DNA of 63,015 nt, filler included, from Lenisia limosa (taxonomy: Eukaryota > Protista > Breviatea): NCBI GenBank assembly GCA_001655205.1. It is 8 parts of 8 records of this genome, joined end to end, with 100 filler letters (N's around TTAATTAATTAA, not from the genome) between each part and the next. Parts side by side here need not be neighbours in the genome. Positions count along the whole stretch, not along the records: positions 1 to 29,309 come from LPNZ01001712.1; 7 more parts are not named here. One strand, 5' to 3'. Shown piece by piece: positions 2,321 through 26,900 of this stretch (positions are counted from its first letter, which is position 1; every line of letters starts with the position of its first letter). Both the position numbers and the translations under genes were made by a program. The notes under the pieces are model-generated. The model did no database searches. It was not told the DNA's origin and saw only the letters and a list, made by a program, of their open reading frames with translations.

Positions 2321-5300
2321 CTAGATATTGACATTTGGGTTTGAAACTTGTGCCTGAGCAATTGATCGGTGGGGAATTTTCAGGGAATTTGAGGCTTCCT
2401 GAAGAGTCAAACAAGTCCTCACCAAACTCAAACACATGACCCCCCGCCTCACGATCAATTTCTGAACTAGCGGAGCGTTAAGATTGAGGGCATTGATTTG
2501 GTCGTCAATTGCCTGATCAACTTGGAGGAGAGATTCCTGAAATGCCTTTTCCTCAGCTCCCGAGGCCATTGCTAAGGGGTGACACTAATTGCTTGGGGTG
2601 TTGCGATTGTGTCTCCAACCAACCAAGCTTGAGCCTGATGATCATCCTTTGCGAGAGAAGCCCCTGATTTGGAGGAATAGAATCGAAAACCGTCTTCACT
2701 GCAGCCTTCATTTCATTAATCTGGCTCACTCATTTCTCACCAACCTCATCGCCCCGTTTTGTGTGTGCTTCGGCATACGCAATCATAGTTACATTGAACA
2801 AGGGGTGGTGTAAAGTCTCGGCGTTACTTGCTAATTGCGCTGCAGAGCGGAGGGAACCACTGTGGTGTTAGATTCAGTTCAAAGTGGTCACATTCTTATC
2901 CCTCCATCCAGCACCAGAATTCAGCCTACACTGCGGCTTTTGCGTCAGTTGAGCGTTTGAGCTGCATGATGCCCTTTCCAACTTCACAGCATGCTCGGAA
3001 GGCATGTGACTGCGTTGTCAGTCTTTGCATATGAGATGCAGTACTTGACCATCCACCATTTGCAATAGTATTGGTGTGCGAAAGAAGTAGGCAGCCAACT
3101 TACTGGGTCATCAGGATTCACCAAAGAATCGTAATTCTTAACTTGGGTATGGTAGAACTCAGCCTAAACGGTAATATATAATATCTATGATATTTGGTAT
3201 ATTATATTGATAAAACCAAAAACTGTGTACCCCCCCTCTCGCCAACGTCTTCGAAATTAGCGATGGCTGAAACAGTGGCTGAAAAGAGAACGTTGGTTAA
3301 AAGAGCCTTATCACTGTCCATGTTGTCTGCTGTCTAAAATGGATTAGTACTTGGAGTCAATCACCAAAGTTCAGTAACAAACCTCCCAGATATCCGAAAG
3401 AATCGTCTGTGCCTGGTGCGGCTGGTTAAGAAGCTCTTGGAAGAAGCTCTAAATATATGAAAATAAACCGACACGGAAAGAACAATCACTTATCACAAAA
3501 CCATACGCTTGTGATTGCATAAGAAACCGCGTTAGCAGCGGCACAAGACGGGTAGGCTTGAACCATTCCATGGGCTGAGGTAAGGTGCTAAAAGGATCAA
3601 ACTTGTTGCAATACAGCGTAACCAAGCCTCCCTTTCCCCTACTTCAGCAGCCGAATAAAAGTCAGTGCTGGCACAGCAAAGGTCTGCCATGATGATATGA
3701 CTAAACAATAAGAATGGCAACAGGTCAAGATTAGCCCCCCCCCCCNNNNNNNNNNNNNNNNNNNNNNNNNNNNNNNNNNNNNNNNNNNNNNNNNNNNNNN
3801 NNNNNNNNNNNNNNNNNNNNNNNNNNNNNNNNNNNNNCTGAAAAGATGAATCAAACAATAGATACAATATGTAGAGATGAGAAATAAAACAATGTATCTG
3901 ACCAAAGCCGTCCACATCATCACGCTTATAAGATTGATACCCAAAGCTGTCCACATCATCACGCTTATAAGATTGATACCCAAAGTTAGTGACGATAACT
4001 TACGATTGGAAGGCGCTATTTCGGGAACTAAAAAATTAGTGAAGAAAAACAGAAGCATGGGAAGAGATCATTTCCGATCTTACGTTCGATATACTTGAGG
4101 GAGGTTGTCAAGATTTTGATTGCCTTTGGGAACTCGGAACCCTGTCGAGCCAACAAGGCTTGAATAACGTCAACCAGAAGCAACCTGGGCAGTCAGGTAA
4201 TTCAAAAAGGACCAGTCAAGTCAAAACGCCAATTACAATGCCTGTGGATGAAGCCATGAGTAAGTCGGGCATTTCAACAAGAGAACATCAGGCCTATTCG
4301 CTCTCAGATGTCTGTTGGCATAGTCACGAGCCATGCTGATGGACCCGGATCTGAACAGTTAATTCAAACTCATCAGGTATCAAGGCCTCCCACCTTATAT
4401 GAGTGACTGCAACAAGGCAATGGTAGTGCAGCGTAAGGTACGCGATCTGAGCAGTTAAAGATGCCAAAAGGAGATCAAGTGCCATGTTATTACCTACTGT
4501 TTCTTGGGGGAGGTTTGATTTGACACCTACACAGGTAAGTTAAAGAGGAGGTGAATAATTTTAATCACGAACCAATAATCTGAAACTCCAAACAAATGAA
4601 AAACAAAAAAAACAAGCAACAACAAACACGAGCAACCAACGCTAAAACTAGACAAAAACCAGATGAACAAGCCTGAGCCAGCCTTTGAAGAGTCCCACCA
4701 CCGCTCCATCACCCAAAATAAAAAGATATGAAATAAAGTGAAAGTTTGTTCCGCGCACATTTTGAATGAATTGAGTTCATTCGCATGAGACTCTTGTCGA
4801 AGTCGTCAACAGAGCCAGTTGTAAGATAAACATGATGGCGTGCGAAAAGGAATACAAGCTTGAAAGTTAGATACTGAAGGGAGACGAGGGGGAGTTAGAC
4901 ATTATTTCCAGCTCACCGCGATATCAAGGAGTTTCTGACTGAACGCGTCAACAACCCCCTTCTTTAGGACTTCATGGGCCGCACAATGGTCCCTGAAACC
5001 TGTCATTGTCGAACAGCAATGATGGAAGGAGAAAGCCCCACTCACTTTTGTTCAAGAAGCAGGACTGCTTGATCAAGACGAAACTTGGCTGTTGTCTCAA
5101 AGTGCTTTCTGTACCAGTAATGCAATTTGTTTAATGAAAGAGTTTTATATTTGTTAAATTGAAAGAGTGCAGATATGATGATAGTTTGATGACTTTAGCC
5201 CAACCTTTTGACCGACTCGTTCTCCGCAGTTTCCAGTACTGATAAGGCTTCCTTGCTGTGATCACTCTTTTGATCCGGAACTGCGGTGAGAGCTGCAGCA

Positions 5301-5737: not shown

Positions 5738-6790
5738 ATGCTTTGTTCAACTGTCTTTCTCAACCTTTTGCTCCCTTTTCGCGTTGGAGAGCTTATAAGT
5801 ATATAAATAATATATATCATTAGTTTTATCAGGAAAGAGCGGCTCAACCCGTTTGCAACCAGAATCCCACTCCATTATGGTTAGCTACAGCTCTTCATTC
5901 TTCGCCTTTGCTTTGCTCATTTTGAATAGGATTTTAAGGGCCAGCAATTAGCGGACAGACTCAACAGAATAATTATCTGGCTGTTTTCTGTAAGAGGGAG
6001 TGGGGNNNNNNNNNNNNNNNNNNNNNNNNNNNNNNNNNNNNNNNNNNNNNNNNNNNNNNNNNNNNNNNNNNNNNNNNNNNNNNNNNNNNNNNNNNNNNNN
6101 NNNNNNNNNNNNNNNNNNNNNNNNNNNNNNGCCTGATTGTTTCTTCTCTTGTGGGTGATAATCTAATGCCAACATCTCAAAAAATGCGTCCCTGACATAT
6201 CAAGGATTCTAGTGTTTTCTACACTGTGAATATTCTTATTATTATTTTCAAAAGCCGCGTTGTAACTCGTTTTCAGGTCGTTCTTCCCGACTGGCCCTTC
6301 CTCAACCGCAACCCCGTCAAATTCATGCCCACTGTCAAGCCGGAAGTAGTTGGGTGGTAATGGAATCATAAATTTCAGCCTGTTAAAATGGCAGAATAAT
6401 AATTCTGCTTTTAACACATTATGAGGTTTTGCGAACTCACTCTTCACATTTCACTTTTTTTTTGTCCTAAATATACTGACTAACTGGTATTCAATAATGT
6501 TAACTTCTTCGACAGGAATACTCATATTGTCCCTATTCCTATTAAACACTGAGTAACATTAATGTTACTTCTTTTTAGGATGAAGACGAAGATGGTATCC
6601 CAACTCCACCCAAAACTTGGTTTGGTTTCTTTTAGTGTACTTTTTCTTATTTATTTCTTTCTAAGTTAACAAAGGTAGTTATGGTGAAGCTTATTTTTTG
6701 AATTACTTGACATTGTCATTATTTGCTATACAAAGGATCATGGTCCTCCTACAATGCCCTTCACTAACTGCTCACAAGAGTGCAAGAATT
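5738..6790 (+). CDS. Small multi-exon hypothetical protein, head-to-head with the MAU2-like gene
   Basis: Candidate exons MLCSTVFLNLLLPFRVGELI|RKERLNPFATRIPLHY| ... VVLPDWPFLNRNPVKFMPTVKPEVVG| ... DEDEDGIPTPPKT| have GT-AG flanks. No family recognised; interrupted by a gap. Confidence 0.35.
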
Positions 6791-6911: not shown

Positions 6912-7943
6912 CTAAGCAGTCGCAGACTTAGGGACAGATCCCTGCTGGATGAGCAAAGTGCAACAGAATGCAACCAACGATTACACTCTCTCTTCTAAAA
7001 TACAAAGACAACCAGTATTATGGTATAAAAGCATGTGAGTGATATAAAAGTTGCCCGTCATACAGGAACGAAAGTTCTTGAGTTGGTGGCCTTGGCGTGG
7101 GCCACAGCCTCCTGGATAGACATATTGGCAAACATGTTGTTGGCAACTGCTCTTTCCTAAGAGGTCAGCAACTGTCCCCGTTTCATATGTATTATTGTTA
7201 AAAAATGTATTTAGGGCTCAATTTGATCCATAGTAATCCAAAATTCAGATTTGGACTACTCTCAACATTAATTTCTACTGGCCACTTAATGATGGGGAAT
7301 GTGAAGCAAAAGCATCAAACCCGATCAAACCTTGGCATCAACACGCTTGAAGTCAAGACACACCAGCTAAACTGTTAAATGCTCTACTCTGAGAGAAAAT
7401 TGAACATACTTCCCTTTATAACACTAAAACCAACCGAGCGGAGAACGTAAATGGTGAAAAGGCGATAATTGGGAAGACGAGCGACACCATTTTCAAGAAG
7501 AGAGAGCACCTTAAGGTTTTCAAGATTAGAAAGGTTCACAATCTCGTCAAGATTGGACACTCTGTTGTTTGTGAAGATAAGGGTCTCAAGATTGGGGATG
7601 TATTCGTCTAAATTAAGAGTGAGATTAAGATCAAAATAATAAAATAACCTACGAAGATCCTTTGCAACGCTGGCAACACGGTTATTACAAAGATAGATGT
7701 TTTTCAAAAGGTTGAAGCGGGGAATATTAGCCACCTTGCGAATAGCGTTGTTAGAAAGATCAATACTATCAAACTGATCCTACAGGGAGTTAATTAAGCC
7801 ACAACAAGTCTCAAAAATACCTGAGTAATTGCAAGATTCTCGATTAGCTGGATACCATTGTCACGGAGATCAAGCTCACGAAGACCACAGGGGTTTGTGA
7901 AAGCCGGGGCATCCTTGACAAGATCTGGAGTCAACCTCACCAT
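6912..7943 (-). CDS. SNRPA1: U2 snRNP protein A' (LRR plus LRRcap)
   Basis: MVRLTPDLVKDAPAFTNPCGLRELDLRDNGIQLIENLAITQ|DQFDSIDLSNNAIRK...NLENLKVLSLLENGVARLPNYRLFTIY is colinear with U2A'/Lea1 (MVKLT..RELDLRG..IENLG.T.DQFDAID). Confidence 0.95.
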
Positions 7944-8142
7944 TATGATTTAGTCAAAATACAAAAGGAGTGAAGAGTGGTACTTAAAATATGCCCTTAA
8001 GGTGCTAGAAAAGAGGAAAATGAATCCTAAAAATTTTCACAAAAATACCAAAAACTGTGGTACTTATATCGATTAGGCGGAAAAAAAATTATAAAAGCGA
8101 GAAACAAAGACAAAGAATCAATTGCTTAAGAGAGAATTGAAG
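7944..8142. promoter_or_regulatory. Putative bidirectional promoter between SNRPA1 and xdhC
   Basis: About 200 bp of AT-rich sequence between two divergent ATGs; function inferred from position only. Confidence 0.5.
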
Positions 8143-10577
8143 ATGGAACCATATTTTATTGCCTCTAAGGCTGCAAGCCTTGCTGTTGACGTAGGCCTAC
8201 AAATCTCTTGATTAACACTTCCTCAGGCGGCTTCTTCTGCCTTCTTAGTTACACCTTTCCGTGTACAAGGATCTGCACCTACCCCAAGAGGCGCAAGAAT
8301 GATCGTCTTCAAGTTAGCAACTTTCCGCATTCAGCTGGATGTCTCATATTCCGAACTTTTGAGCAGGCTTATTTTGAGCTTGTTGAATTGATAGCATTAT
8401 AATTTGATCTTAGTTAATATAAAATCTATTGTGTAAATTGGATAAATTTGCGGAAATGGAGTCTTAATTTTATCAGGAAGAATGCATGCGACCAGCCGAG
8501 CAAGCGCGCGAAAAAGGGAATATCGCTATCAGACACGCCGGTGACTGGCATGCCTGGCTGGCATATCACTGTGAGGGGTTCAGCTGGGTTGAGTTGTGTG
8601 GTTTAGTACTATGCTTAATCTAATTTATTGATTTCTCATTTGTCGAAAAAACTATCATATATTTGCTATTTATTTTTTTTCTGAATAGGAAGGCAAATGA
8701 TGCATATATGCTGCCATCCTTTAAAATATGATTTTCGAACAGCTTTATTTAAACATAGTTGAAATAATTTATATGTGGGGGGGGGCAGTGAACGGGCATA
8801 ATTGGACTTAGGCTAATATCATATGCAATAATAACCAAGAAAGAAAAGCCTTTTGTATACTCTGCCTAACAGTTATTTCAGGGCACACTTGGAGGCGGAC
8901 TCATGGAACATCGCAACATCGAGAAGGCCATTTCTGTGAGCTGCTGGGGTAATGATGATTTTCCGTCCGTCTTGCGAGTTGATTAATTGTCCAGTTGGCG
9001 AACTCTTCGGACAAGGCGGTGCTGTACCACTACTCTTCGATGAACGAAGACATTGATGAAGCGCTTCCTGTATGTTCTTTGTAACTGTCAGTTTTTTTCC
9101 CTGCTAACCCAAATATTGCTATAAATTTTCTAGTTTGTTAGATTATAATCTTCCATATTCCAGGTTTGTGGTGGAGAGACGTGGATGGTTGTTGAACGAT
9201 TGGACCGACTCACCCACAACGGTGATGGTAGGCGTGGTTCTCGATTGGTTATGCCTTCAGAATTCAAGATAGGGTCAGAAGCAGCTCAGAGGACCAATGT
9301 TGTTGAGGTGAGATATTGTTGTTGATGTTTATCTGTTTCTTATCCTACCAGTTCCTTCGCTTGCCTAAAGATGGGAAGGCTGTGCAACGCCAAATAGTCT
9401 CACGTGAGAGGTGGTTTAAAAGTCAAATACAGTACAACATGGGCCTTGCATCAGCTTTGGTCATTTCTTTTTCTTCATAGTGGCCCAGAGGTATCAATGT
9501 CAAAATGAAACCCCAACAATGTGATTGTATCCAAGTGAATTTTTAGTTGGCGATGACGGAGAGTACAGCACCCTGGTTGGCACCCTAGGGTCGGAGGAAC
9601 TGGACAAATGGAGTAACACTATCGCTGCAGGAGTATGAAGCGTATTATGAACTGTTCTGTCATTATTGGCTGGTTTAACGTTTTAGGCCTTCAGAAAAGG
9701 GATGCACCATCGCGTCACCCTCCCCCACAGTAAGCTTCGCTACTTGTACCATGTGTTTATGTTGTAGGTGACGAGGAGTTGATTGCATACCCCTACAACT
9801 TCTCACCCTGGGTATACATATTTGGAGGCGGACACGTCGGCGCCATGGTAGGTCGCTCGGGCTGTCTGACCTCCAGATCTGTGAGATCGCTTCAATGGCC
9901 AATTTCAAGACCTGCATCCTCGACCACCGTCCCGAGTTTAGCAATTCTCAGGCACACCCGAAGGCTGATAAGGTGCGTGCGTCTTTCGATTCCTCACAAC
10001 ACAGACTGTGACAATTCCTGGAGTGGACAAGTATTTCGATACCGTTTCAAGTCTCAAGGTACGCCAGTTGATGGTGCTGACATCTTTAGGTGTGCACACA
10101 TGACAATATTGTTGCTGTTTCAAGGTGAGGCTAAGAGGCGATGGTATCATTTCTCATTTTACTGTAGTGGTCATATTGGAGATCTCAATGTTGTTGATGC
10201 CGCTCTCAGATTCGACTGTTTACCGTATAGGGGCATTGTGCCATGGCCACATTCATGTTCATGAATTATTATATATCATATGATATAGTATACTCTTTAG
10301 TATGATATGATCTTAGATTCCCCAAATTCTTACAAACGCAGCTATGTTGGCATGATTGGTTCGCGAAGAAAGAGGGGCATGGTATACGAAGAGCTCAGAA
10401 GCAAGGGCCATACAACAGTAGGACTGTCCAGGCTCTCACAGTTAGGACGAAATCGACCGAATCCACAACCCCATTGGCCTGCCCATTGGAGGCGAGACTC
10501 CAGGCGAAATCGCAGTCGGCATTGTGGCCGAGTTGGTAAAGAGACGCTATGGTGGTCGCAGACTGCCCAAGGTCTAG
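8143..10577 (+). CDS. xdhC: XdhC/CoxI-family molybdenum-cofactor chaperone (xanthine dehydrogenase accessory factor), about 15 or more spliceosomal introns
   Basis: Spliced exons give all family motifs in order: FLVTPFRVQGSAPTPRGARMIV, GTLGGG, CGGETWMVVERL, a second GTLG, VYIFGGGHVG, FKTCILDHRPEF, GHIGDLNVVDAAL, YVGMIGSRRKR, DRIHNPIGLPIGGETPGEIAVGIVAELV, then TAG. Confidence 0.9.
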
Positions 10578-10803
10578 GGAGGGTTTTTGAGGCTCTTATA
10601 TATTGTTTCCTTTTCAACTGTGTCACATATTGGTGAGGACTGGGATGCCTTTCGACGATTATATTTACAACACCAACACCGGGCTTATTATTGCGGTATC
10701 TGTGAAGAATTTTAAACAACCGCTTGAAAATGTCATCCTTTTGCATCGACGCTTTCAGTAAGTAATTCAAGAGGGAAGAACATTCATAAATACAAGAGGT
10801 ACA

Positions 10804-13800
10804 TTACTTGAGAGCCGTTTGTGCGGCTCTTGCGTTGTCGAGTGACTCGAAAATTGGGGCGTAGAATCCACTAACATCCAATCGCTCGGCTGGGAAGGTC
10901 AAAAGGCACGGAGAGAGAAAGAAGAGAATAACCAACCTAGTTGGCCAAAGAGGGGTAAACTCATGGAGTACATCTTCAGCGCATCTACGTAGTGAGAGAG
11001 GAACCCCAATGAGGCATCGTTGAATTTAACTCATTATTATCAGACATGACATGATACATAAGATACTAAATACAGTTATAATCAATTTTGCCACTCAGGT
11101 TACCCCCCCCCCCCACTAAAGAACAGGTGCATGTAGTCGACGAACTGCTTCTCAATCGCAATAACCGAGGCGTTGTAGTTCACTGAGGCCAAAGCTGACT
11201 CGATCGCCTCATTCGCTGTGGCAACTGACGTGTTTCCGGGATCCTGCGGGGGGGGGGGGTGATGTTTCAAAAAGTGGTGAAAAAGAGGGGAATCACATCC
11301 CTCCGAAAATTAAGAGCCTGGTTTGTGATTCTTTTTTTATTCCTTATACATCCCTACGCTATGCAGTCTGATGTTGTCGACAATCGCAAACAGTCGCGAG
11401 TTAGTGCTGACATACGACTCGCAAATGGCAAGAAGTTTTTGAAGAATCTGGCGGAGGGGGGAGTAACAGCAGAATATACCTTGGTACAACAGTATTTCAT
11501 TTTGCATCTTCACAGTCGAGAGCCAATACCCCCAACCTTGACCAATTTCGGATGGTCGAGAGCAAGCTGGAAGAGGGTTGAGTCTAAGAACTGCTTCTGA
11601 AGGTCTATGACCTCATCCACTGTTGATGCCTACACTGTCATTTCCCCCCAGTTACAAACCTGCTTGGCTTCCTCAATGAATTTTGTCCACAAAGTGTCGA
11701 TAACGTCCACCAGACTGTAGAACAGCAGAATTTGGACCATTTGCAGCATGGCCTGGCGGGTGCGGTGCGACCGTCGGAACTGCCGGGAGGCTGGGAGGTG
11801 GCGGATGGTCTGGGTGTGAGGGACGAAATATGCCATTGAAAAAAGTAACTTGAGTCATACTTTATCAAGAAACCGAGAGTTACAAAGGCGTCTCTCTAGC
11901 CCCTTCAGTGCGAAAAGATGCCTAAGACATGAAAAACAGACGCGCAAAACTGAACCTGAAGATGAGCTGGTACTTCACGATGGACTGATGGCTTAAGACT
12001 AAACTGACAGGCCACTTGACCTCACAGTAAAGACCTGGGCAGGTAATGTCCAGGAATGCAAATCGTTCAAAGTCAGCATATAATATGCATATCGATATGA
12101 TATACAGTACATATGTACATATGATATGTATGTATGTAGTATCAACACTTATCAATGATTTCAGTACTTCCGTCAGCTTACTGAAACATTCCATTGCCTC
12201 ATTCGGGACTTCCCCTTTTTTGCTGTCTCCTCTGTGGATTTGCATAATCTAGAACGTCAAAGGCAAAACTGTCATTCGGAATAACGCTTGCATATGAGTA
12301 GCGCATACCTGGTCATAAACAGTCGCCGAGTGTAGCACGTAGGAGACGTCTTCAACAAAGGGGTCTACGGGATTGTCAGCAACATGACTATCTCTAATGC
12401 AATAGGCTGAAACCGCCTGGTATGATGCTTTTCCTTCGGGACATACCATCAGACGCAGCGCTGCTGGAAATTGCCATGTCCAAGAGGGTGGTGAGCCGAT
12501 GGCGCACAACCTTGGATGAAGGCTTTGCAAGTTCGTCACCTGCAGTGTTATTGCATGTCTCGTGACTACGGATATCTCATTTCAATTGTGAAGGCCAATC
12601 CCATGTTTACCGACTGTGTCGAAAATCATGGTCAATAAGTCACCTTGCTGCCCGAGGAAGAATTTCTAAACATATATGTAAGCTACTGGAAAAGAACTAA
12701 TTGAGCCCATACGACATGTGTTCCTTTACGTTCCTCATGTCATTTAATATTCACAATTCTACAAAATTGCTGACATTTATATGAACAGACAGTGACCGGG
12801 ATAGTCTTATACATATAATAATATACTATACTAATGTTACAACATGTTGTAAATAAGGCATGTACTACCCTCCAACTTTGAATGTAGTTAAATGATCGAA
12901 AAGTCGCTCATCATTGATTAAATGATTCAGAAGTGCCTGGTGTGGTTAACCTTTTGACCCAAAAGGGCATCTTTACAATTCGTTCGCAGCAAAGGTATTC
13001 ACCTCTCACCACGGAAGCATCGGAATAAGTGCTTTGGATGGTTTGAGCATAGGTATTGGCATCAATGGAGTAGGGCACAACCGAATTTGACGTTTGGAGC
13101 TTGTTACACTGTACAAGTACGTTCAAGAACTTGCCTAATGCGGTCATTAAGGTCCTAATCTGTAAGGGAAGTGACTCACCAGCAACAAGGGCTTTGTTGA
13201 CCAAGGTCAGGGAACCCACGGGAGCCAAGAAATCGGGTACCTGGTCCTCTCGTAAGGAGAATCTCTTTTCCCAATATCTGAAGGAATTAATGAATTAATG
13301 ATGCATGAGTCATAATGAATCCTGGGGTCATACCTGTCGTTGTATTCAAATCTATTTTCGGTGATGGTGTCGTCAATACAGACAAAGAACTCCTGGAAGG
13401 GGTCTGTCACCACCCCCCGGAACAACCAGTCGCTGAGCTGAGGGGTCACGGGAGGGGGGGAGTAATATATACGGTATGCGATATGGGGATTATAGGCACA
13501 GGGGGACAATAGTCCCACCATTTCTAAGAGCGGCTTGGCTGCAACCATAGACAGGTGCTCCAGTAAACTCTCAGCAGTTGTGTTTCTAATTTGATGAAAA
13601 CTGATACAATTCAGAGCTCAAATACGAGGAAAAAAACGATTCAAAATCAACATTTGACTTCAGGCATACCCAGCCAAAACATTCCTCAGTCTCGACACGA
13701 GGTTGTAAAAGGCAGCACCATTCATGGGATTATTCATGGTTGCCTCGGCCTTTTCAATCTAAAAAAAGTGACAAAAGACATCAAACCAGTCATAAGAAAG

Positions 13801-16330
13801 AGGCATCTTAAAAAAAGAAACAAATAGTGTACCTTCATTCTCACAAGAACTTATAATGCGCATACCTCAGTAATAAGTCGGGTGAGAGTGTAAAGCGTCT
13901 TATGCGCGGGTTGGAGATAAAACCACAGGTTCTGAAAGGTGACAAACAACAACAAGGCCACATACCTGGAGGTTCAGCTTGTTTTGCCTGAATTGGAACT
14001 CCAATTGAGCGATTAAGAGCAAAAGGTCCTGAACCGTTATCCAGTAACGTAGCAAACCAACCTTGTCAAATGCTCTTATGGCAGCAGCGACTGCCTGGGG
14101 TACCAAGCCTACTGCGTTAAAGAAAGGAAAGGGGATTTTCAACCTAAGTCACATAGCACATATCATATGTTGAATGAAGTGTTAGAATGTACCTGATTGG
14201 GCTAATGAGCGGCTTTCATAAAACTCCACTACTCTGAGGCGAGACGTGCAGATTGACGCTATCCGCCGAGCCAAGTGTGCCCTTAGGGGTCAAAATCTTG
14301 ATTTCAAACAGCATCGTGGTTTGAATACAATATACTCTAAATAAGTAGAGTATAGATCTCCTCATGTACAGTGGCCGTGGTCTTGACCGAAAAAAATCAG
14401 ATTTCTCTTAAGAACAATCACTTATTATGGTCACTGTATGTAAGCCCATTAAGTGTTTTAATCTCGATCATGAAGATGTCAATACCGATCTAATTTGCCT
14501 TGATAATTACACATCTTTGCTCCATAACAATTCTAACAATGGCTGTACTCCCCCCCCCCCCCNNNNNNNNNNNNNNNNNNNNNNNNNNNNNNNNNNNNNN
14601 NNNNNNNNNNNNNNNNNNNNNNNNNNNNNNNNNNNNNNNNNNNNNNNNNNNNNNNGAAAATGTACTGCCCTTCGACACCCTAAGAAATAAGGAAGAAGCG
14701 CACGAAGGCACATATATCATCGGCTCCCCACAGACCCCAAGAGCGTATAACAGATCTTCAGTCAGAGCCTGGTCCTGAGCATTGTGATTCAGAGCAATCA
14801 GGCTGGCAACAGGTTGGCCCGGAAGCTTCGGAAGCTTGGAGGCGTACGAAGGTTCCGACGTCTCAATGGCCATGGTGGACATGGGGGTGAGCTGTGAAGT
14901 GGCTGGCTGTCTCTGTGAAAGCGCAGAACTGGACTGGTGAACACTTCGACAAAAAGGAGGCTTTCATTTCGGAGAAATGTAAACTTGATAGCAAACCTCT
15001 GCGGGAAGTGCACAGACTTTTTGGTCTCAGTAATGATTGGCTTGGGAGCGATGGAGGGTTTGTAGGGCTGAAGATCGACTGGAGAGTATTGCTTTGTGGC
15101 GGCCGGCACGGGCTCAACAGGTTTCGGTACCGAGGGTTTTGGCTGGCTCGGAGGGGGGTTCTGCGAGGGCATGAATGTGACCTCAAGAAAAGAGGATAAG
15201 TCTTATGCTGTTGTTTATTTCCCTCCAAATAGAATCACATATACTGGAACTCACCTGAGAAAGAACACTGGGCTTCTGTTGGATAGTTGAAGAAAGGGCC
15301 GGCTTGGAGGGTTGCGAGGAATAGGGGTTGTGGAGGGTGGAGAGAACAGAACGTTTTGGGTCCTTGGCAAGAGGTTGGAAGGGCTGTGGGCCAGATGAGA
15401 ATTCCTGAATGGAGGTGAGGCAGCTGACAAGCTTTGGTGTTTCCCTTCATTAATAATTAATAAAATGATGTAGCCTCCTTTGTATACAAAAGACACAATT
15501 TTCAGTGATCGGGATAAGTCTTAACCGATTTGCTTATGATTTCTAAAGGAAAATAGGTCAAGAATTTGGTCACTGGTCCTTCAAGGATACATCAGATTTA
15601 CCATTTAAGCATATGTACTGGTAAGAATACCAAATGAAAAGAGTTTAGACCAGGACTATGAAGCTGAAAGATAGGCAGGATTTATTACTCACTTGTGGAG
15701 TTGCTGATGGTGCTAAGGGACGCGAAGAGAACCGAGAGGCCTGCAATTTCAATAACAGATGTGTGAGATACATTTGGGTGGAACACTACTCACATTTGAC
15801 GCTACAGCTGTGCTAGAAACTGTACTCGAAGGCCTTGAAGGATTTGACTGCTGAAAAATGAATCCAACAGAATGGCGGCGGGAAGGGAGGGAGCCTCACC
15901 TGGAGGGGAGCAGAGGTCCGGGTGACAGTTGATGGTGGGGGGTCCAAGGGGATGGATGTCGTGTTGCTGGGTTGTACTGAAGACCTAAATAGGTCAGCGA
16001 CAGAAAATACAGCAATCCAACATCAGCTGAGATGGAATATAGTATATACTTAACGGTAATACCTTGTTTCAACGTATTCCCAAATTTGTAGCAGATACAA
16101 GATTGACCCTCAGCTCACTGTGTACTCCTTAACGGTTGAGTGACTGTAGATCTAATAGGCGGTACTGTAGCGGCTGTGACATTGTTCTCGGCTGCTTTGG
16201 GCTGTGTGTAGTTTGATCTTGTGGGGAGGGTTAGATCAGGACGAGGAACGGTTGGATTGAAGCGGAAGGCCGGCTGGGAGGATGATGTCTCACTTTGGGG
16301 CTTGGTATTGCCCCCCATGTTTGATTGCAT
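10804..16330 (-). CDS. TUBGCP2: Gamma-tubulin complex component 2 (GCP2/Spc97) with a long Pro/Ser/Thr-rich N-terminal region
   Basis: GRIP motifs QDQALTEDLLYAL, QAVAAAIRAF..LLLLIAQLEFQFRQNKLNLQ, LSDWLFRGVVTDPFQEFFV...YWEKRFSL...GKFLNV, RQAMLQMVQILLFY, VDEVIDLQKQFLD and RLDVSGFY. Start codon tentative. Confidence 0.9.
15503..15575. mobile_element. Family A mini-MITE (Tc1/mariner-like CAGTG termini) in a GCP2 intron
   Basis: CAGTGATCGGGATAAGTCTTAACCGATTT...AAAATAGGTCAAGAATTTGGTCACTG: imperfect terminal inverted repeats, with related copies at 51661, 53013, 53589 and 54115. Confidence 0.7.
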
Positions 16331-16743
16331 TAGGAGAGGCGATAAGAATAGCCTTGTGTTTCAAGATTCGGGCATTGCATAAATTCAAGATTTTCTTTCT
16401 TTGAGGCACCACTTTCTGAAAAAAACTACAAAAATATCTTAAAACAATATTGACACGTTAAATAATACCCGAAATAGTTCTGCTTTCTGCTTTCTGCTGA
16501 GAAAAAAATGGAAGTAAAGAGCAATAACATTAGTTACATGGTTTTTGGAAAAATGAGGAAAATTGTTGAAATTGCAGTTGAAATTGTGTAAATTCATAAA
16601 TATATGTCTATATACGCTTAGTTACATCTAAAAACAGCTAGTTTTACCACTTTAATTTCCTTAGTCTTGAGATTTCGGATTCTTTTTAAGTTTGTTGGCG
16701 CCTTCCACCACTTTCTCGTTGCTTTTGATATTAAATTACTGTA
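16331..16743. promoter_or_regulatory. Putative bidirectional promoter between GCP2 and the SH3 gene
   Basis: About 410 bp of AT-rich sequence between divergent starts; inferred from position. Confidence 0.45.
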
Positions 16744-19700
16744 ATGTCGCAAGAACCACCGTTTGAAAGTTCGTTTTACTCATAACCGTTTTGTTCATCA
16801 CATTTTCAGGAACAGCTTTGTTCCCGTATAGCACAGACAAGGAAGGATGCATTTCTTTTAATAATGGGGATACCATTGTTATTGAAGAAATTCGTCCATC
16901 AGGGTAAGAGGAGCAAACCTCAATTACATTTGTTCCTCTCTCGATGCATTTCTTATAAACGGCAACAGGTGGTGGAGAGGCCATGTTGCTAACCCAGGCG
17001 AGACTACCGGCCAATCAGGATTACTCCCCTCTAACTTCCTGGCAGAAGATGAATGTAAGATAGCATGCTGTTGGGTGCACAGGGTTGATTAATCTGCGGC
17101 TTCACTCTGATATTATTGTTATTATTTCGATTCACCTTCCAGCTCTTCAAGCGCCGCCATTGCCGTCAGCCTCAGCCTTCATTGCGCCAAATCAACCCCA
17201 AGGTTGGCTCGGTTACGTGGAAACTGCTCTTATGGTTAATACTTACATTGGCTGTCCTACGCTTGCATTTATTTGTTCAGACTCGAGTGTTCCGAACTAC
17301 GAAGCTATGACGCCGGGCACTTTGAGTAACGCGTTTCCTCCTCCAAAGGTTGGCTTCTGGATAATGGTTGTGTATCAAGTGATCGATCGGAACACAAATA
17401 CTTTGTCTGTTCCAACTTTGCCAGGTTCAAGTCCCCCAGAAAGCCAGCAGTCTCTCAATAGGCAATATGGTCCATTTCGAGTCCCCCCAGTCTGAAGCAT
17501 TGGTTTGATGGCCTTGTAATATTGATCCTTTGTGGTGACGGTGTACTTATCGATTCTGGGGTCGTAATTTTATTCCGTAGACCCCTGGAACTCCGATGGA
17601 GCAAAACGGTTTGTTGGACGGCTTGGAGGGAATGGGTTGAGTGTCAAGGATATCAATGATTTGCTCAGGCGGCTCGCCTGCCTCCTTGGCCTCGCAGATG
17701 CAAGAGCTGCAGACCATTAACATGCAGCTAGCCCAGAGAATGACGGAGGCGGAGAGTGCATCAAGGTTTGTCCAACATCATCGTCTTATGGCTTCAGAGC
17801 CTCCGACCTGAAACTGCTGGATCTGACGAAGGACTTCAATGCCACGGCCCGTGAGAACAATCGGCTCAGAGTCTGCAGAAATACCCTGTCTTACTGCCCC
17901 TTATTGTTTCGGATATTGTAATGGAGAATTTCTGGATGAGCTTCAGATTGACGGTTTAGAATGATTTGAAGGAAATTAACGAGCAAAACGTCGCCTTGGA
18001 CTCTGAAGTACATCAATTGGTTTGTGACATGGCAATTGACTCACCTTTTAGACGGCGGAAAGAGACACGGTACTCAGCCACGTGACAGCCATCGAAACGG
18101 ACCTTGAGGAGAGCCTTGCCAACTTACAAGCTCGTTGGTTGCATTTTCTTCTCATCTAACCTCGCAGAATCTGCGCAAGTCTTGGCATTAGAGCCACTAG
18201 CTGCCCAACTTGACAAGGCGCAGGAAGCTAAACAGAAAGTGAGTAAAGCATGTGCGGTGACCTTTTAGGCGGAGGAAGAAATGATGGAGTGGCAGAAGTT
18301 GGCTGGGTCTGCACGGAATGAGGCAGCAAACGCCTTGTCCACTTGCGACAAAATTCAAATCGAGTTCACCAAGTGGGGGATTGGACATGTTGAGTGTTAG
18401 TAGGGTGGATTGGACATTTATGATGTAATAGGTGCCGTCAAATATGGGAAGCTGAGAAAGAGGAGTATGAAAAGAGGATCCAGGTCAAGCAGAAAGGTTG
18501 GTGCACCTCACCTCGAAGGCAATTCACTGTTTCAGACCAAAATGAATCGGAAGTTGTTAGCAAGCTTGAAGCCGAGCTTGCTAGGTGGGTGAGAGTCGTA
18601 TTATTTGCCGTATCAGAATAATTGTGTTCACAGTGGCAGATGGCGGACAGAGTCAGCGCAGTGGAAGGCAGAAGCTTCAGCCCTCTCCGAGAAGGTCCTG
18701 AACTTTGGTAAGCAGCATTCATGACTGAACTGACCCTCAGAAACGATCCAAGAAGAGCTAGCGGCAATGACGCTGAGTCGGGACAACGCTGCATCGACCG
18801 TGGTCACAATCCAGGTGGGCACCCCTGTCTGTTGTGACGCTCTAGGCAGGGCTTCAGGCTGCCGAAACCAGGAATGTCGAAATGGGCTCGAAGATCGAAG
18901 TAGGCCACGCCTTTAGGGGCTTTGTTGACCTTTTGCCTCACTTTCCAGGAGCTAACAGCAGATAACGTTTCTATGGCCGAAGAGTTAAACAACCGAATGG
19001 ACTTAGTGGACACACTCACAAATGACAACAAGTTCCTGGCAGACCAGGTTTGTCTGGTTTTTTCATGGTCTATTTCGGGTGCAAATCTCACACACTAGGT
19101 CCAAACTCTGGCAAGTGATCAAAGTTCGTCTGAAAACAGGATGCACGAACTTGAGAATACGATTATGCTCAGACTGCAAACCCTCGATGAGGAGAGCTCG
19201 TCTCGGAAAGAGGTGAGAATCCATTGCTTGAAGTGTGACAACGACAGAAAGTTGAGAAGCTTCGAATGCAGAAAGCTGCATTGGAGGTGGAAGTAGCCAA
19301 CCTCAAGGATCAACTGTTAGTCCTTCCCTTGACTTTCTTTAACATATTGACTGACTCCTTAGGGAACATAGCTCAGCGCTTCCTCAACCAACAGTCCCAA
19401 GCACCCCTGAACAAGAGAACACCGTCAATGAGTCTTCTGACCCCCACGTTCTTGCGCGCCTCCAGGCAGCCAACAACGAGATCACCAACTTGCAAGCCGA
19501 CCTTGACGCAGCCCAGTTGCGTCGACGCAACGATGCCGACGCCGCAAGCTCGCGTGAGGATGAGCTTATGGAGCAGTTGCGCGCTGAGCGTCAGAAGCGC
19601 GCAGCCCAGGACGTGAGCCTTGATGATGCGCAACGGGACCTTTTGGTCGTCGAAGCCAAGGCCAAACGGTAGGCCTAGTGTTTTCATTTTTTCATGTTCT

Positions 19701-20914: not shown

Positions 20915-23900
20915 CTAAAACATGTCCTCTAATATGCTGTCGCGATCGGTGATCGGAATCGAAATCGCATTCTCGTCAAAATCCTCGAAAACAAAGCCTA
21001 GACCGTCAGATCGCCAAACAATACCCTCTCTAGCCCCTGCGTACTATGGTCCATAAGATTGACGAGATCTTCGGGGGCGGCGGCGGCGGTAGTAGACACT
21101 CCGGCAGTCTTGAGGTCCGAGCTGATGGCAACTACGCCCTTGACCAACGTGTCAACCTGCTGAGTGAGAACTACCTGACTATTATGCTAACTACTCAAGA
21201 ACCCTCCTCCCAACCTGTACTCTGAAATAGTCCCTGCGAGACTCGGATTCTGAAACCGAACTGCCCAAAACGGAAAAGGCACGTTCCGCTGCCTGGTTGC
21301 TCTGACGTGTCACGGTAACGGCTCGGTTGAGGCGGGCCATTAGTTCGGCCGCATTAGGAAGGTTCTCGGAAGTAGCAAGAATGACTTCCGAGGTAGAACT
21401 GATTTGTGCCAAGCTTTGCGCGGCCTTGGCGCAAGCGTCGTTCACCAAATACGAGGGTGAGTCGAGGGACAAGCTTGGGGTGGTGTCGAACTGTTCCAGA
21501 ACATTCTCAAGGAGGATTCTGCACTTCTCAGCGGCGGCATCCACACAGTTCAATGTGGTTACGTGCTCAGCCCGCACCACTTCCGCAGCTTCCGATGCTC
21601 TGTAGACCTGAGACTCCAGAAGGGACACAAGACGGCCAAGGTCCTGGGCGTGTCCTGTGAGGACATTGCATCGCCGCTGCCACCGTTTGCCCTCCTGTTG
21701 CGTAAGGAACTGGACTGCTGACGTCACTGTCGTCATGACGTCATCTCCAGCTGCGGGGGGGGGGGGTCAGATTCCATAGGTCTGATCATGTTTAAACAAA
21801 TGCATAGACATTACATTACGCAAGGCGGTTAAAAATAACAAATTAAGTCCCAATGGTAATGGTATATGGTAAATATAAATGTGAACATTTGCGATGGCCA
21901 TTCAGAGATCAGTTCAAGACCGACCAGGAGGTTTACTGACGTCTTCAACGATGAACTGCTTCGACAGGTTAACAAGGGCGTTTTGTGCGTCCTGCAGGGG
22001 CTTCTTGAAGCTGTCATCGATGCTATCGGAGTCGGAGATTTGGATGGATTGGTTGAGGTCATCGGCAGCCTCTTGCAGGACGTTCAAAGAATCAGATGGC
22101 GTGTCAAGTTGCAGGGTCAGGGCTGGGTTACCAGGGGACAACAGCATCTTAAACTCCTGAATCGTAAAAGGGGAACTTGTTATCTCTATATGATTGACGT
22201 GTCGTACCTGTACGGTTTCTTCAGCTGAGTTTGCTCTTTTTTGCCACGACTCTAGCGCGGATTGAAGGCCGGAAAGTTCACTGAAAGGTCAGAGGATAAC
22301 TGCAATTGCACTCATAGAATAATTATGAACTATACATGTATACTGGAGAATGATTGAAGACAATCGTACCTTGGCGAAGGAGGATTGGCACACGGACTAG
22401 CTGTGGCGTCTTGAAGGTCTAAAAATGTCAGATACAAAACTGGTTTCAGTGCTTCAAAGTCTCAAAAATACCTTGAACGCGCTTTTGGTCCTTCAGCCAG
22501 TTGTGTCGCATAGTTTGCAGCTCATTGTCCAGGTCGCGGATGGTCTCCTCTGCTGTCATGAGTTGGGCCTTTAGATCACTGATCGTTTCTTCGCAGCTCA
22601 AACAGCGCTGGGTCTGGAGGTCAACTTCACGCTTCAAGTCGGCCCGGATAGCGTCAGAAGCCTCGTCGGAACGGATAAGCTCGGACAGGGCTCTGTCGGC
22701 CTCGGCAGCCGCAGCTTCGCGGCCGGCTTCCAAAAGAGCCTGCAGGGACAGGCTGGAGGCTAGCTCGTCCTTGAGGTCGGAAATGACTTCTTCGGCCAGA
22801 CTTAATTTGGACAACGCAGAAGCCTCGGCGGCCTGAGCATCGGTAATGGCTTTGGACGACTCATCATGAGCTGCCATGGCCGCTTCTTCCATTTCCAGCA
22901 TTTTGGCCTCAAACTGTTCGCTGTTGTCTGACATGCGCTGCGACTGATCAGCGATCTGACTTTGGAGGCTGTCGCACTTCTGTTTGGAGGTAGCGAGTTG
23001 TCCGGAAAGAGATGTTCTGACATCATGGAGTTCGACGTCTTTCTCGTCGACAGTCGCCGTGAGACTTTCAACGCTCCCATTCAACCGGCCAATTGCTACA
23101 TGGCCTTCCTTTAGTTGTCGAGACTTCTCCTCTAGCTGTTGGTTCGCTTCCCCCAAATCGTCCTGACTCTTCTTTAGCTCTTCCTCCACGGAGTCAATTT
23201 TGCTGCTTAGAGTCATGTTCTGTGCTTTCATCTCGGTCAGTTCGCTGATCTGTTGATCGAAAGCAGTTTTCTGAGTATCACGTTCCTGGGTGACCAAGTT
23301 GTAGTCTTGGCGACACTGAGCCACTTCGGACTGTAAAAGCTCAATGTCCTTCGTCTTGACGTCCAAGGTGACCTGGATGGACTGAAGGTCCTGGAGATTA
23401 GACTCTGCAGCGTCGGCGGCGTCATTGAGAAAGCTTCGGAGGGTTGCAACCTCCGTGGTGAGGTCAATGGCCTTGTTATCGAGCTGCAGTCGTTCGCGTT
23501 CATGCGTGGCGCTGAGCGCAGATAAGTTTGTGTCGTACTCTTCTTTAGACATTTTGAGGTCATCCAGAGCTTCGATAAGCTTCAGCTCAACATCAGCCAC
23601 ATTGGCTTCGAGGACAGCGAGACCCTTGTTCTTGGCATTGAGCTGGTCTTGCGTAGTGGCCAATATGGATTGCACGTGAGTCAGTTCGTCAGACTTGGCG
23701 TTGTGCGCGTCCTTCAAATCCGCCAGTACGGCTGTCATTCTGTCGAGGTCATGCTGCTTACTATCGATGTCACTGCGAACGTCACACAACTCCTTCGTTA
23801 GCTTGTTAACAGCTGCGTCGTGGAGGGCCGTTTCTGCTTGCTTGTCCTTTTCTGCCGTTTGGAGGGCAGCCTCGAAGTCGGTGATGAGATGCTCGAGTTC

Positions 23901-26900
23901 GGCACACCTGGAAGAAAGGCTGGTAACCTGGCTTTGTTGCTCCATTTTCTTGTTGTCAGCCAACTTCAAGTTTTGACTAAGCGCCGTGACCTGGGCCTCA
24001 AGGTGACTGGTCTCGGCTTTTTGGGCCAAAAGCGCATCCGAAGCCTGCTGGTCCGCCTGCATAGCTTCTTCTACTTGTGACCGCTCCAAACTCAGCTGCC
24101 TATCAACCAGCGATTCCAGTTCGCCCTCGGCCACGGCCAGACTCAGCTCCACAGTCTCAACGTGTTCAGACAGACGTTCGGCCTCGGTCCGTTGGGCCTC
24201 AAGACTGAAGACAGTCGACTGGTGCTGGTCCTTGGTGTCTTGCAGCTCGGCAAGGGTGGCAGAGAGGGTCGAGCGGCACTCCTGGTAGGCAAGAGCCACG
24301 TCATCAAGCTGGGCAATGACGTCATCTTCTCGCTCCTTGAGCTGGGCAATCTCAGCTTCGTACTGGCTGAGAGCATCTTCGGCTGCCTGAAGAAGGGCTT
24401 GGGTGTTTAGGAGGTCACTTTCAACTTCCTCATTCTGGGCTTTCAGTGTATCTCTGTCCTTCAACGCTTCAGAAAGCTGGTGTTGGAGACTCTCGTTGGA
24501 ACTTTGCGCGGCTTCGGCTTGAGCCTTGAGCTTGTCCAGGCCGGAGACGGCCTCTGAAAGGGCGGTGTTGGCGGTGTGGAGTTCTTCATTGAGCGCTTGC
24601 GTGAGGCGTGTGTGCTCCTGAAAGGAAATGAGAATAACATACAAAGATATCAATACATTCATAGTGCATCTAAAACATGGCATACCTGAGCAGTGGTGTC
24701 ACGGTCTTCTTCCAATCGCTCAATGGACGCATTCAGCTCCTCAACAAGATTTGACGTTTGACGTAAAGTCCTATCCGCCTCAGCCTGAAGGACAGAAATC
24801 TGGTCACGTGACTCGACGAGGGACTCCTGCAGCGCCTCTTGCGTGGCGTCCGCGTCGGTCTGTTCCGAAATACTAACACGCTCAAGGTTCCGCTGACAGG
24901 TACTGAGATTCGATTCCAGTTCGGATTTGGCAGTTTCTAAAAGCGATAGCTGAGACCGGGCGGCTGCCAAGTCGGAAGCGGCCTCGGTAAGTTCTGCCTT
25001 CAGCGCCAAATAGAGATCTGAAGATTCTTGCAATTTTGTCTCTAGCTCTTCAATACGAAGGTTCTCTTCAGTGAGGCTGACGTTCTGAGAAGTGATTTCC
25101 ACGATTGTAGCGCGGAGGTCCTCAGATATACCCCGGGTCGGGCTTGAAGAGTCCCAAAGAACGGGACTGGTCTGGCACGAATTGGAGCTGAAGGGAAGGG
25201 GTGGAGGGGTCGACGCAGTGTCGGACGGCGGGAGGGACGGAGTAGGTTCAGTTGATGGGGATGAACAGAGGTGGAAGGTGGTAGAAACGGTCCGTTTTGG
25301 AATGGGACTTAGGACAGAGAACATGTTGCGCGACGCGATGGAGTCTTGAAGGGCAAAGCCAAGCCGGTCATTCAGCAGACTGGTCTCGTTGTTGAAGCCG
25401 TCAACAAGAGCCTCAAGGTTGGCAATGGTTGCTTCTGATGACGTTCGAAGCACCTTCAAATCGCCTTCCAAACTCAGGACCTGCGAGGTCAGGACTTGGA
25501 CCCGCTGTTGGTCCTGGAGATGCATTCGCTTAAGCTGGCTGCAGACTTTGGTCAGAGCTTTGGACTTCATGTTCTCAAACCGAGCTTGGCTCTGCGCCCG
25601 AACCCGCCTCGAGATTTGGTCCTCTAAATTCGACTCGGCAGTAGTGGTACTTTGCCAGGCAGCTTCAATACAGTTTACAATGGACGGTGGGGGCGACGGT
25701 GGATGATTTTCGGTCGGGTCGGAAGCTATGTTGAAAACTATGTCGGAAGCAATGTCGGAAGCTGGGGAAATGGACCGCGGAGTGGCGCTGTTCATTCGTT
25801 CACTCTCGAAAAGTGGCGGTGAGAGAGTGCGCGGAGAGGCCACCTGGATTCCGGCATCCGAGGTGTGATACAGGACGGGTGACGTGGCACATTCCTGAGA
25901 GGCGACGGGGGCGGAAGACGACAGCATTGCGTGGAGACTTTGCGTGGCGTGCAAGGCTTGTTCCTCATATTCCGAGACTCGCGACTGAGCAGCGGCAAGT
26001 GCCTGGCTGTGTCTGCTGTCCACTTCAGCCAAATGTGAGGTCAGCGTTCCGAGCATTTGCGTCCGCGTGTTGAGCTTGCTTGCAATGTCGCCTACCTTCC
26101 GTAGCAGCACTCCTGTCCGCATTTTGGCGACGTTTTTGCTGACGGCGGCGGCGGTGGCAATCGGCACGCTCTCGGCATAGGCTGAGAGTCGTGAGGCGGC
26201 ACGGACAAAGACGGGTTGCAATTGGGGAGGGAGGGTGGAGGTGTCGGGAATGTTGCGTGGCGCTGGCGCATGGTTGGGTTCTTGCGTGTCTGAGAGGGCT
26301 TGCCAAAGGGCCACAATCGCACCGTCAGATGTAACAGGGTTGGAGGGGGTGTTGCCTCGAATGTTTTCAACGCTCTTCAGCTGGAGCTCAAGTTGGCGTG
26401 ATTTGAGGCGCGAGAGTTCCGATTGGCGCCAACCCTCACGAGCCAACTCCCGCATAGCCTCAAGACCCTGGCTGGGACACGTGGGGGGCTCGACCGGGAT
26501 AACTGGCCTGATAAACGGCTGTGGTAGCCAGGGGAGGGCAGCTGAGACCTGCGGCTTCAGAGACCGGACCGGCTTGGTTTGAGTTTTGACTTTCAACGCC
26601 AAGCATAACGCATCCACAGCGCTGGTGTCAACAACAACCTGCGGCGGTGGTGGTGGAGGGACAACTTGCAACTGAGCCTCTAACCGAGCCAGATTACCAC
26701 CAGTTTGAGCCGACTCAGCCCTAAGATCGGAAATTTCCTTCCGAAGAGCCGGGACAAGAGCAGCGTCGGACCGCAGGAGCTGGGCTTCCTTGACGGCAAC
26801 TTCAGCGCGCATGGCGTCACGTTGCGACGACGCCCAGGCTTGATCACGGTCGCGGCGCACGTCGTAGAGCGATACAGTGCTGGAGTCAACAGCGGCGGCA

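Follow-up and report, generated by a model that had tools for sequence, protein, structure and literature searches.

Is XdhC, a bacterial-type chaperone of the molybdenum cofactor (Moco), encoded in the nuclear genome of a eukaryote, and if so, what is it likely to do there? The question is raised by a locus in a 63,015-nucleotide stretch of DNA, filler included (hereafter, the window), from the breviate protist Lenisia limosa (GenBank assembly GCA_001655205.1), whose positions 1 to 29,309 come from record LPNZ01001712.1. Reviews of molybdoenzyme maturation confine XdhC to prokaryotes and set it against the Moco sulfurase of eukaryotes, and a 2010 review states that eukaryotic genomes contain no XdhC homologue (PMC2997495). 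We found that the XdhC of L. limosa is a genuine, transcribed and fully intronised eukaryotic nuclear gene with an orthologue in a second breviate, Pygsuia biforma. The best explanation overall is probably that of a functional, laterally acquired nuclear gene for a cytosolic Moco chaperone. The presence of XdhC in two breviates contradicts the claim of the review (PMC2997495) and breaks the textbook-level split that assigns XdhC to prokaryotes and MOCOS, the Moco sulfurase, to eukaryotes. The protein itself is an ordinary member of its family, and the novelty lies in its eukaryotic host: our searches for literature on eukaryotic or breviate XdhC, or on Moco in Pygsuia, returned nothing relevant, and we found no earlier paper in the searchable literature that reports a eukaryotic XdhC.

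A transcribed and intronised XdhC gene

Three-frame translation of positions 8000-10700 recovers the XdhC motifs on the plus strand, in order, across a series of short open pieces. The spliced model runs from an ATG at 8143, the first after an in-frame stop, to a TAG stop codon at 10575-10577, and comprises 17 exons with a coding sequence (CDS) of 1179 nt, which specifies 392 amino acids (aa) and a stop in a frame that is unbroken throughout. The exons are short (35-132 nt, mean 69), with a GC content of 51% against 37% in the introns, which measure, from 5′ to 3′, 36, 164, 311, 59, 94, 33, 44, 143, 54, 38, 29, 32, 31, 43, 117 and 28 nt. All 16 introns have GT-AG ends and donors of the form GTRNG (R, A or G); ten are in phase 0, three in phase 1 and three in phase 2, and their density amounts to one per ~74 nt of CDS.

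The locus was found in two public runs of one 2016 study, and contigs of both were placed on window positions 7300-11300. A DNA-type run holds all the sampled words of the locus and yields a contig colinear with the window; this contig is probably the assembly's own source and thus constitutes no independent evidence. The other run, labelled 'METATRANSCRIPTOMIC RNA-Seq PolyA', holds 26% of the sampled words, approximately as expected of a spliced transcript, and yields a contig of 1222 nt that spans the locus and ends in the library adapter. Fourteen of the 16 introns are visible in it, as 12 listed GT..AG intervals and two short omitted stretches (29 nt at 9847 and 28 nt at 10418). The remaining two (10125-10167 and 10225-10341) were deduced from the 148 nt of contig that lie between 9970 and 10342, into which only these GT/AG pairs fit. 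Since such a spliced form cannot arise from DNA, transcription and splicing of the XdhC gene are shown. An earlier reading of the window from its sequence alone (hereafter, the original prediction) had described the ordered XdhC/CoxI motifs at 8143-10577 and about 15 or more GT-AG introns, and had named RNA as the check on splicing; the motifs are recovered by translation, Pfam and alignment, the count is 16, and the RNA contig carries the intact 392-aa open reading frame (ORF) with the introns removed.

The Pfam search was run on the exon pieces, whereas the NCBIfam comparison and the structure prediction were run on the Pygsuia orthologue in place of the spliced Lenisia protein. Among single pieces, the XdhC_C domain (PF13478) is matched with 40.5 bits (cut-off 29.7) at 10446-10574, with weaker matches on the pieces 10301-10633 and 9772-10008, and the XdhC_CoxI domain (PF02625) is matched with an E-value of 0.0023 on the piece 8227-8304, a score that falls under the gathering threshold because the exon-2 piece is a fragment. 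The full 392-aa model recovers XdhC proteins in phmmer and blastp searches with E-values of 1e-42 to 1e-60 over residues ~15-385; its best phmmer match is the Pygsuia protein (6.5e-57), and many bacterial proteins of 310-370 aa follow at 1e-44 to 1e-48. In an alignment with 13 relatives, the Lenisia protein keeps the motifs GS.P, ARM, GT.GGG..E, CGG, G.GHV, P.AD, GH..D, Y.GMIGSR.K and PIGL.IG..P.EI, and retains most of the columns in which the bacterial relatives show no variation. Its PVCGGETW (exon 6) lines up with the CGG present without exception in the relatives compared, and the highly conserved cysteine of this motif, Cys82 of Rhodobacter capsulatus XdhC, has been singled out in the literature (PMC2997495). 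Judged by this alignment, the Lenisia protein is a full-length member of the XdhC/CoxI family.

Two further elements of the original prediction concern GTLG motifs. The insertion of about 30 residues that it placed before GTLGGG is real: it adds 26 residues relative to bacterial XdhC, corresponds almost exactly to exon 3, and lies between the two introns of greatest length (164 and 311 nt). The second GTLG half-repeat also exists, as VGTLGS in exon 9, but it is not the peculiarity that it had been taken for, as bacterial relatives have it too (RGTLGS or VGSLGS); on the alignment, it is an ordinary middle-domain feature of the ~350-aa XdhC subfamily. The Pygsuia orthologue has an insertion of 17 residues at the exact site of the Lenisia insertion before GT.GGG, which differs from it in length and sequence, and, unlike Lenisia, it carries a second insertion of ~19 residues ahead of the CGG motif. 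The orthologue is known as a transcript alone, and its intron positions are thus not comparable with those of Lenisia. The exon-3 peptide includes a patch of basic residues, PSKRAKKG, similar to a monopartite nuclear localisation signal; this patch is not shared by the Pygsuia insertion.

The Pygsuia protein (P0001; EukProt EP00033_P002651; transcriptome shotgun assembly GCRY01002932; 409 aa) is the closest full-length relative, with 36% identity and 194 bits, rising to 74% identity in the part that aligns with the last exon. Its AlphaFold2 model (pLDDT 85.6, pTM 0.83) matches the fold of the XdhC-family crystal structures solved in the PDB, namely 2WE7/2WE8 (Mycobacterium smegmatis homologue of Rv0376c) and 3ON5 (Bacillus halodurans BH1974), with TM-scores by target of 0.71-0.75 and Foldseek E-values of 1e-20 to 1e-24; the identity of the Pygsuia protein to these structures is 19-24%, with sequence-match E-values of 1.6e-22 and 1.7e-9. 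A fold search of the AlphaFold database returned XdhC-family clusters.

Bacterial proteins are more distant: the nearest show 31-34% identity to Lenisia XdhC, and none exceeds 34%. The ESM Atlas returned bacterial clusters only, and among the matches listed (the best 120 for each of the P0001 query and a mixed profile), P0001 is the sole protein from a eukaryote. A phmmer search with exon 17 in 1.84 billion cluster representatives, a scan that carries no source labels and is silent on eukaryotic distribution, gave 753 matches; none is identical to the window, and Lenisia XdhC is thus absent from that collection. Lenisia XdhC was likewise not returned by the search with the Pygsuia orthologue or by a profile that included the window's exon pieces. 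It is also missing from a collection of 15 billion proteins in which its contig is represented by fragmentary unspliced calls only; XdhC being missing and its neighbour U2A′ fragmentary there, it follows that intron-dense protist genes are missed by annotation.

A putative cofactor chaperone in breviates

XdhC takes molybdenum-molybdopterin (Mo-MPT) from MoeA and protects it, NifS4 sulfurates the cofactor while it is held, and insertion into XdhB then follows; PaoD acts likewise with molybdopterin cytosine dinucleotide (MCD) for PaoABC, the cofactor being sulfurated by NifS4 or IscS and inserted into XdhB or PaoC (PMC2997495, PMC13653126). R. capsulatus XdhC and Escherichia coli PaoD belong to the same family as the breviate proteins and have in common with them the conserved cysteine and the Rossmann domain at the C-terminus. 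The breviate proteins differ from the canonical XdhC model (TIGR02964; ~246 positions) in their extra middle domain and insertions, and, unlike R. capsulatus XdhC and E. coli PaoD, breviate XdhC does not share an operon with its target. By analogy with these chaperones, the Lenisia protein would bind the cofactor, and a genuine role as a Moco chaperone is, in our estimate, fairly probable. Based on the homology, an XdhC dimer would bind Mo-MPT or MCD delivered by a molybdenum insertase and shield it against oxidation; a cysteine desulfurase would exchange the equatorial oxo ligand of the held cofactor for a sulfido ligand; and XdhC would then insert the matured cofactor into an apo-enzyme that belongs to the xanthine oxidase (XO) family. 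The N-terminus of the Lenisia protein aligns with the start of the bacterial proteins without any extension; no organellar targeting signal is thus apparent, and we predict the protein to be cytosolic.

The genomic contexts of bacterial relatives are in keeping with Moco metabolism. Bacterial members of the subfamily that includes the breviate proteins are found in a modABC-MoCF-moaA-moaC-MOSC operon (L002 and L003), and modABC/moaA/moaC/MoCF/MOSC operons are the setting of members of NF045664 ('XdhC family aldehyde oxidoreductase maturation factor'; e.g., the Clostridium-type P0155 and P0168), which is the best curated model for P0001. In a metagenome-assembled genome of Latescibacterota (L004:3658-7101), the XdhC gene directly follows genes for a CoxD-like AAA ATPase and a CoxE-like VWA protein. 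This arrangement is that of a coxDEF-type maturation module, and CoxLMS are not visible within the stretch examined. In Desulfocucumis palustris (L077:6001-8159), the gene next after XdhC fuses a MocA/MobA-like NTP_transf_3 domain to an HD domain; we know of no description of this architecture for cytidylyl-Moco synthesis.

MOCOS and its counterparts ABA3, HxB and Ma-l play an analogous role, supplying the sulfido ligand to XO-family enzymes, and are unrelated to XdhC in sequence and fold, being composed of NifS-like and MOSC domains; MOCOS is proposed to act on the cofactor when it is already inside the enzyme (PMC2997495). Tentatively, and with some doubt, we posit that breviates may use a prokaryote-style route of cofactor maturation for XO-family enzymes, in which XdhC and a cysteine desulfurase carry out sulfuration before insertion. 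Such a route might serve either a molybdo-hydroxylase of bacterial type, gained laterally and possibly dependent on MCD, or the xanthine dehydrogenase/aldehyde oxidase of the host, with the canonical Moco sulfurase replaced or supplemented. If true, this would be the bacterial maturation pathway's first case in a eukaryote, and the XdhC gene, bacterial in origin and with 16 introns, would double as a dated natural experiment on massive intron gain. Breviate XdhC in any event offers a concrete and directly testable handle on XO-family maturation in anaerobic protists and in an early-branching obazoan.

Several points weigh against the interpretation as a laterally acquired chaperone. Nothing within the window bears on a target enzyme, and the MocA-type MCD pathway and selenium-dependent partners (YqeB/YqeC) put forward in the original prediction are speculative. 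A few positions that are invariant among bacteria are altered in the Lenisia protein, D..Y....T.GH reading T..N....S.GH and DDR reading DHR. In the trees described below, the breviate branches are long (2.4 substitutions per site for Lenisia and 1.5 for Pygsuia), the pair being only 36% identical. P0001 matches NF045664 end to end with 229 bits against a cut-off of 350, and TIGR02964 with 106.7 bits against 161.6; falling under both equivalog cut-offs, it is a member of the family and not an equivalog of either curated subfamily. The long branches together with these scores imply that the function could have shifted or relaxed. The RNA evidence consists of contigs assembled in the study that also produced the genome and is silent on the unspliced fraction, and the survey of eukaryotes is shallow, being word-indexed or confined to the best 120-150 matches listed. 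For comparison, the nearest bacterial relatives, P0270 and P0041, score 314 and 335 against NF045664, likewise under its cut-off, which P0155 passes with 431.

The competing account that deserves the most attention is that the XdhC fold has been kept and its job has changed, with the protein now handling another cofactor or a step of sulfur or selenium transfer, or serving as a Rossmann-type scaffold, in place of XO-family maturation. The long branches, the sub-threshold NCBIfam scores of the Pygsuia orthologue and the lineage-specific insertions are all compatible with it, as is the use of MOCOS instead by well-studied eukaryotes. Nevertheless, the CGG cysteine, GT.GGG..E and PIGL.IG..P.EIA are kept across the Lenisia-Pygsuia split, as continued cofactor handling predicts, and the bacterial relatives lie in Moco contexts; we therefore regard a changed job as unlikely. 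That these motifs have been kept over so deep a split argues for purifying selection on cofactor handling.

Origin of the breviate gene

We computed three maximum-likelihood trees under LG+C20+F+G4, two of them quick (96 and 109 rows) and one careful (57 rows, with ultrafast bootstrap and SH-aLRT supports). Lenisia and Pygsuia are sisters in all three, with supports of 97, 99 and 100/99, and this pair is nested inside a bacterial metagenomic group (P0270, P0269/P0109, P0151, P0134 and P0271) with supports of 83 and 96 in the first and second quick trees and 99/100 in the careful one. The clade of the breviates and the P0270 group in turn adjoins the XdhC proteins of Latescibacterota, Zixibacteria and Gemmatimonadota (98/93), and a scan of GTDB species found the best identities to the P0270 group (45-47%) in the same three phyla. 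The proteins of the P0270 group and of these phyla have the same three-part architecture of ~350 aa, including the GTLGS of the middle domain, but, unlike that of Lenisia, their genes are intronless and have no exon-3 insertion. In the P0270 group, the genes are continuous ORFs, located on compact contigs among bacterial neighbours (a sigma-54 activator, HisKA, CcmH, MgtE and DUF302). Long-branch attraction was considered as the source of the Lenisia-Pygsuia pairing and rejected: in leave-one-out trees, each breviate alone still falls within the P0270 group (SH-aLRT 100 and 96), and the pairing is therefore not such an artefact.

The lateral transfer from bacteria that had been proposed from the sequence is thus upheld by the phylogeny. 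XdhC is not unique to this protist. Since Pygsuia has an orthologue, the transfer predates the split of Lenisia and Pygsuia, and inheritance within Breviatea has been vertical since then. Lenisia branches below the clade that holds Pygsuia, with only Breviata and FB10N2 deeper (preprint 10.64898/2026.01.29.702055); hence, XdhC is at least as old as the common ancestor of the breviates other than Breviata and FB10N2. The history that we infer, direction and date included, is most likely that of one transfer of XdhC from a bacterium to a breviate before the Lenisia/Pygsuia split, with heavy intron gain and with its function retained. The ancestor of Lenisia and Pygsuia would have taken the gene from a bacterium most closely related, among named lineages, to Latescibacterota, Zixibacteria and Gemmatimonadota. 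Spliceosomal introns of the host type (16 in Lenisia) would then have entered the gene, along with a surface insertion specific to the lineage (exon 3) and expression signals like those of the host.

Anaerobic protists, breviates among them, are well known to have gained metabolic genes from bacteria by lateral transfer, and XdhC joins the bacterial genes that have shaped the anaerobic metabolism of breviates. With its bacterial descent and extreme intron load, it provides a clean example for the study of intron gain.

Could the gene instead be an ancient eukaryotic XdhC, present in the last eukaryotic common ancestor or in early Obazoa, lost nearly everywhere and surviving in breviates with no lineage-specific transfer? 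Such an origin would accommodate the very high intron density (16 in 1.18 kb), the deep divergence and the occurrence of XdhC in two distant breviates, and the survey of eukaryotes is incomplete. However, the breviate pair lies inside one bacterial subgroup (99/100) and does not form a deep separate branch; the sole eukaryotic XdhC among the best 120 matches of each source-reporting search is that of Pygsuia, and the family review denies eukaryotic homologues (PMC2997495). On these grounds, an ancient origin appears distinctly improbable. Less probable still is that the gene is a decaying relic, that is, an expressed pseudogene of an old transfer. Fast evolution and the substitution of some otherwise invariant positions might point that way, but the ORF is intact over 17 exons with all splice sites canonical, the motifs are shared with Pygsuia despite an overall divergence of 64%, and the assembler depth, a poor measure of expression, is 29.5 for XdhC and hence of the same order as the 19 and 119 of the neighbouring housekeeping genes.

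Flanking genes and other features of the window

The XdhC gene is embedded between two eukaryotic genes (Table 1). Upstream, it lies head-to-head with the gene for U2A′, whose RNA contig, on the minus strand, ends at 7970, with ~165 bp separating the transcript ends. The U2A′ introns (41, 45 and 68 nt) read CT..AC on the window strand, which is GT..AG on the minus strand. Downstream, XdhC is tail-to-tail with a gene for a gamma-tubulin complex component (GCP), whose transcript has its 3′ end at 10775, ~180 bp away. A query with the U2A′ piece returned the call from the window's own contig and the L. limosa EukProt cluster EP01086_P018216/7, and the spliced U2A′ translation is identical to the L. 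limosa EukProt proteins over the three exons compared. This residue-for-residue match identifies the window as nuclear DNA of L. limosa (Breviatea) or of a near-identical strain. Both flanking genes and their orientations had been named in the original prediction as an argument against contamination, and the domain matches, the RNA contigs and the identity to EukProt proteins bear it out. That XdhC is a bacterial contaminant or a chimeric assembly, as might be suggested by a xenic culture that holds Arcobacter and other bacteria, by libraries labelled metatranscriptomic and by a DNA run that is probably the assembly's own source, has a negligible probability in view of the 16 spliceosomal GT-AG introns removed in an RNA contig from a polyA library, the spliced eukaryotic genes some 170-180 bp away to either side in one DNA contig, an exon/intron composition typical of the neighbours and the absence of any bacterial protein above 34% identity.

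Table 1. Positions of the XdhC exons, domain and transcript and of the two flanking genes, counted along the window
Feature	Position	Strand	Remarks
XdhC exon 1	8143-8190	+	
XdhC exon 2	8227-8312	+	start of XdhC_CoxI N-terminal domain, LVTPFRVQGSAPTPRGARMIVF; PF02625 E 0.0023 (26-aa piece); aligns with bacterial GS.P/ARM
XdhC exon 3	8477-8570	+	lineage-specific insertion between ARMIV strand and GTLGGG (alignment)
XdhC exon 4	8882-8935	+	GTLGGGLME; GT.GGG..E invariant among bacterial relatives
XdhC exon 5	8995-9069	+	
XdhC exon 6	9164-9227	+	VCGGETW with the family's conserved cysteine (Cys82 of R. capsulatus XdhC; alignment)
XdhC exon 7	9261-9307	+	
XdhC exon 8	9352-9403	+	
XdhC exon 9	9547-9632	+	VGTLGS of middle domain
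XdhC exon 10	9687-9729	+	
XdhC exon 11	9768-9847	+	
XdhC exon 12	9877-9972	+	PF13478 match on piece
XdhC exon 13	10005-10058	+	
XdhC exon 14	10090-10124	+	
XdhC exon 15	10168-10224	+	
XdhC exon 16	10342-10417	+	PF13478 match on piece
XdhC exon 17	10446-10577	+	PF13478, 40.5 bits (cut-off 29.7)
XdhC_C Rossmann domain (exons 11-17)	9768-10577	+	IFGGGHVG, LDHRPEF, GH.GD, YVGMIGSRRK, PIGLPIGGETPGEIAVGI
Assembled XdhC transcript	8136-10591	+	~7 nt 5′ and at least 14 nt 3′ untranslated region (by coordinate arithmetic)
U2A′ (SNRPA1-like LRR protein), 5′ exons; divergent upstream neighbour	7435-7970	-	spliced RNA contig; LRR_9 3.8e-24
Gamma-tubulin complex component (GCP) gene; convergent downstream neighbour	10775-13617	-	GCP_N_terminal and GCP_C_terminal matches; RNA contig

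The L. limosa proteins in EukProt include two U2A′ isoforms (P0346 and P0347; 160 and 193 aa) that diverge after '...KRVDAK', which suggests an alternative 3′ splice site or a retained intron downstream of the exon at 7435-7607. The loose end of the U2A′ RNA contig at 7330 fits the longer isoform (minus strand, 7300-7970). Public-collection calls from the window's contig (36,622 bp) include U2A′ pieces of 116 and 49 aa (P0345 and P0348) that read into introns (7387-7970) and look as though they had been produced by a gene caller blind to splicing; no XdhC protein is among those calls, and the intron-dense genes of this genome go virtually unannotated in that collection.

Scans of the window with Rfam and for tandem repeats found nothing that bears on the XdhC gene. 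A 39-bp tandem repeat (2.2 copies, 97% match) is located at 3902-3985 beside a gap of N's, and runs of N's are present near 1900-1950, 3700-3800, 5990-6130 and 14560-14650, from which we conclude that this is a gapped draft scaffold. The minus strand has proline/serine-rich pieces at 14800-16400, and on the plus strand, a stop-free piece at 16886-17089 resembles, by eye, the end of an SH3 domain (GNRWWRGHV...GLLPSNFL). Further along, at 21194-29093 on the minus strand, there is a gene for a very large coiled-coil protein with stop-free exons of 191, 124, 750, 926, 397 and 103 aa, for which Pfam gives weak coiled-coil matches only (IFT57, Filament, ATG16 and Fez1). Its GC content is 53-57%, compared with 32-48% over the window's first 15 kb, and its exons are kilobases long, against the 69-nt mean of the XdhC gene.

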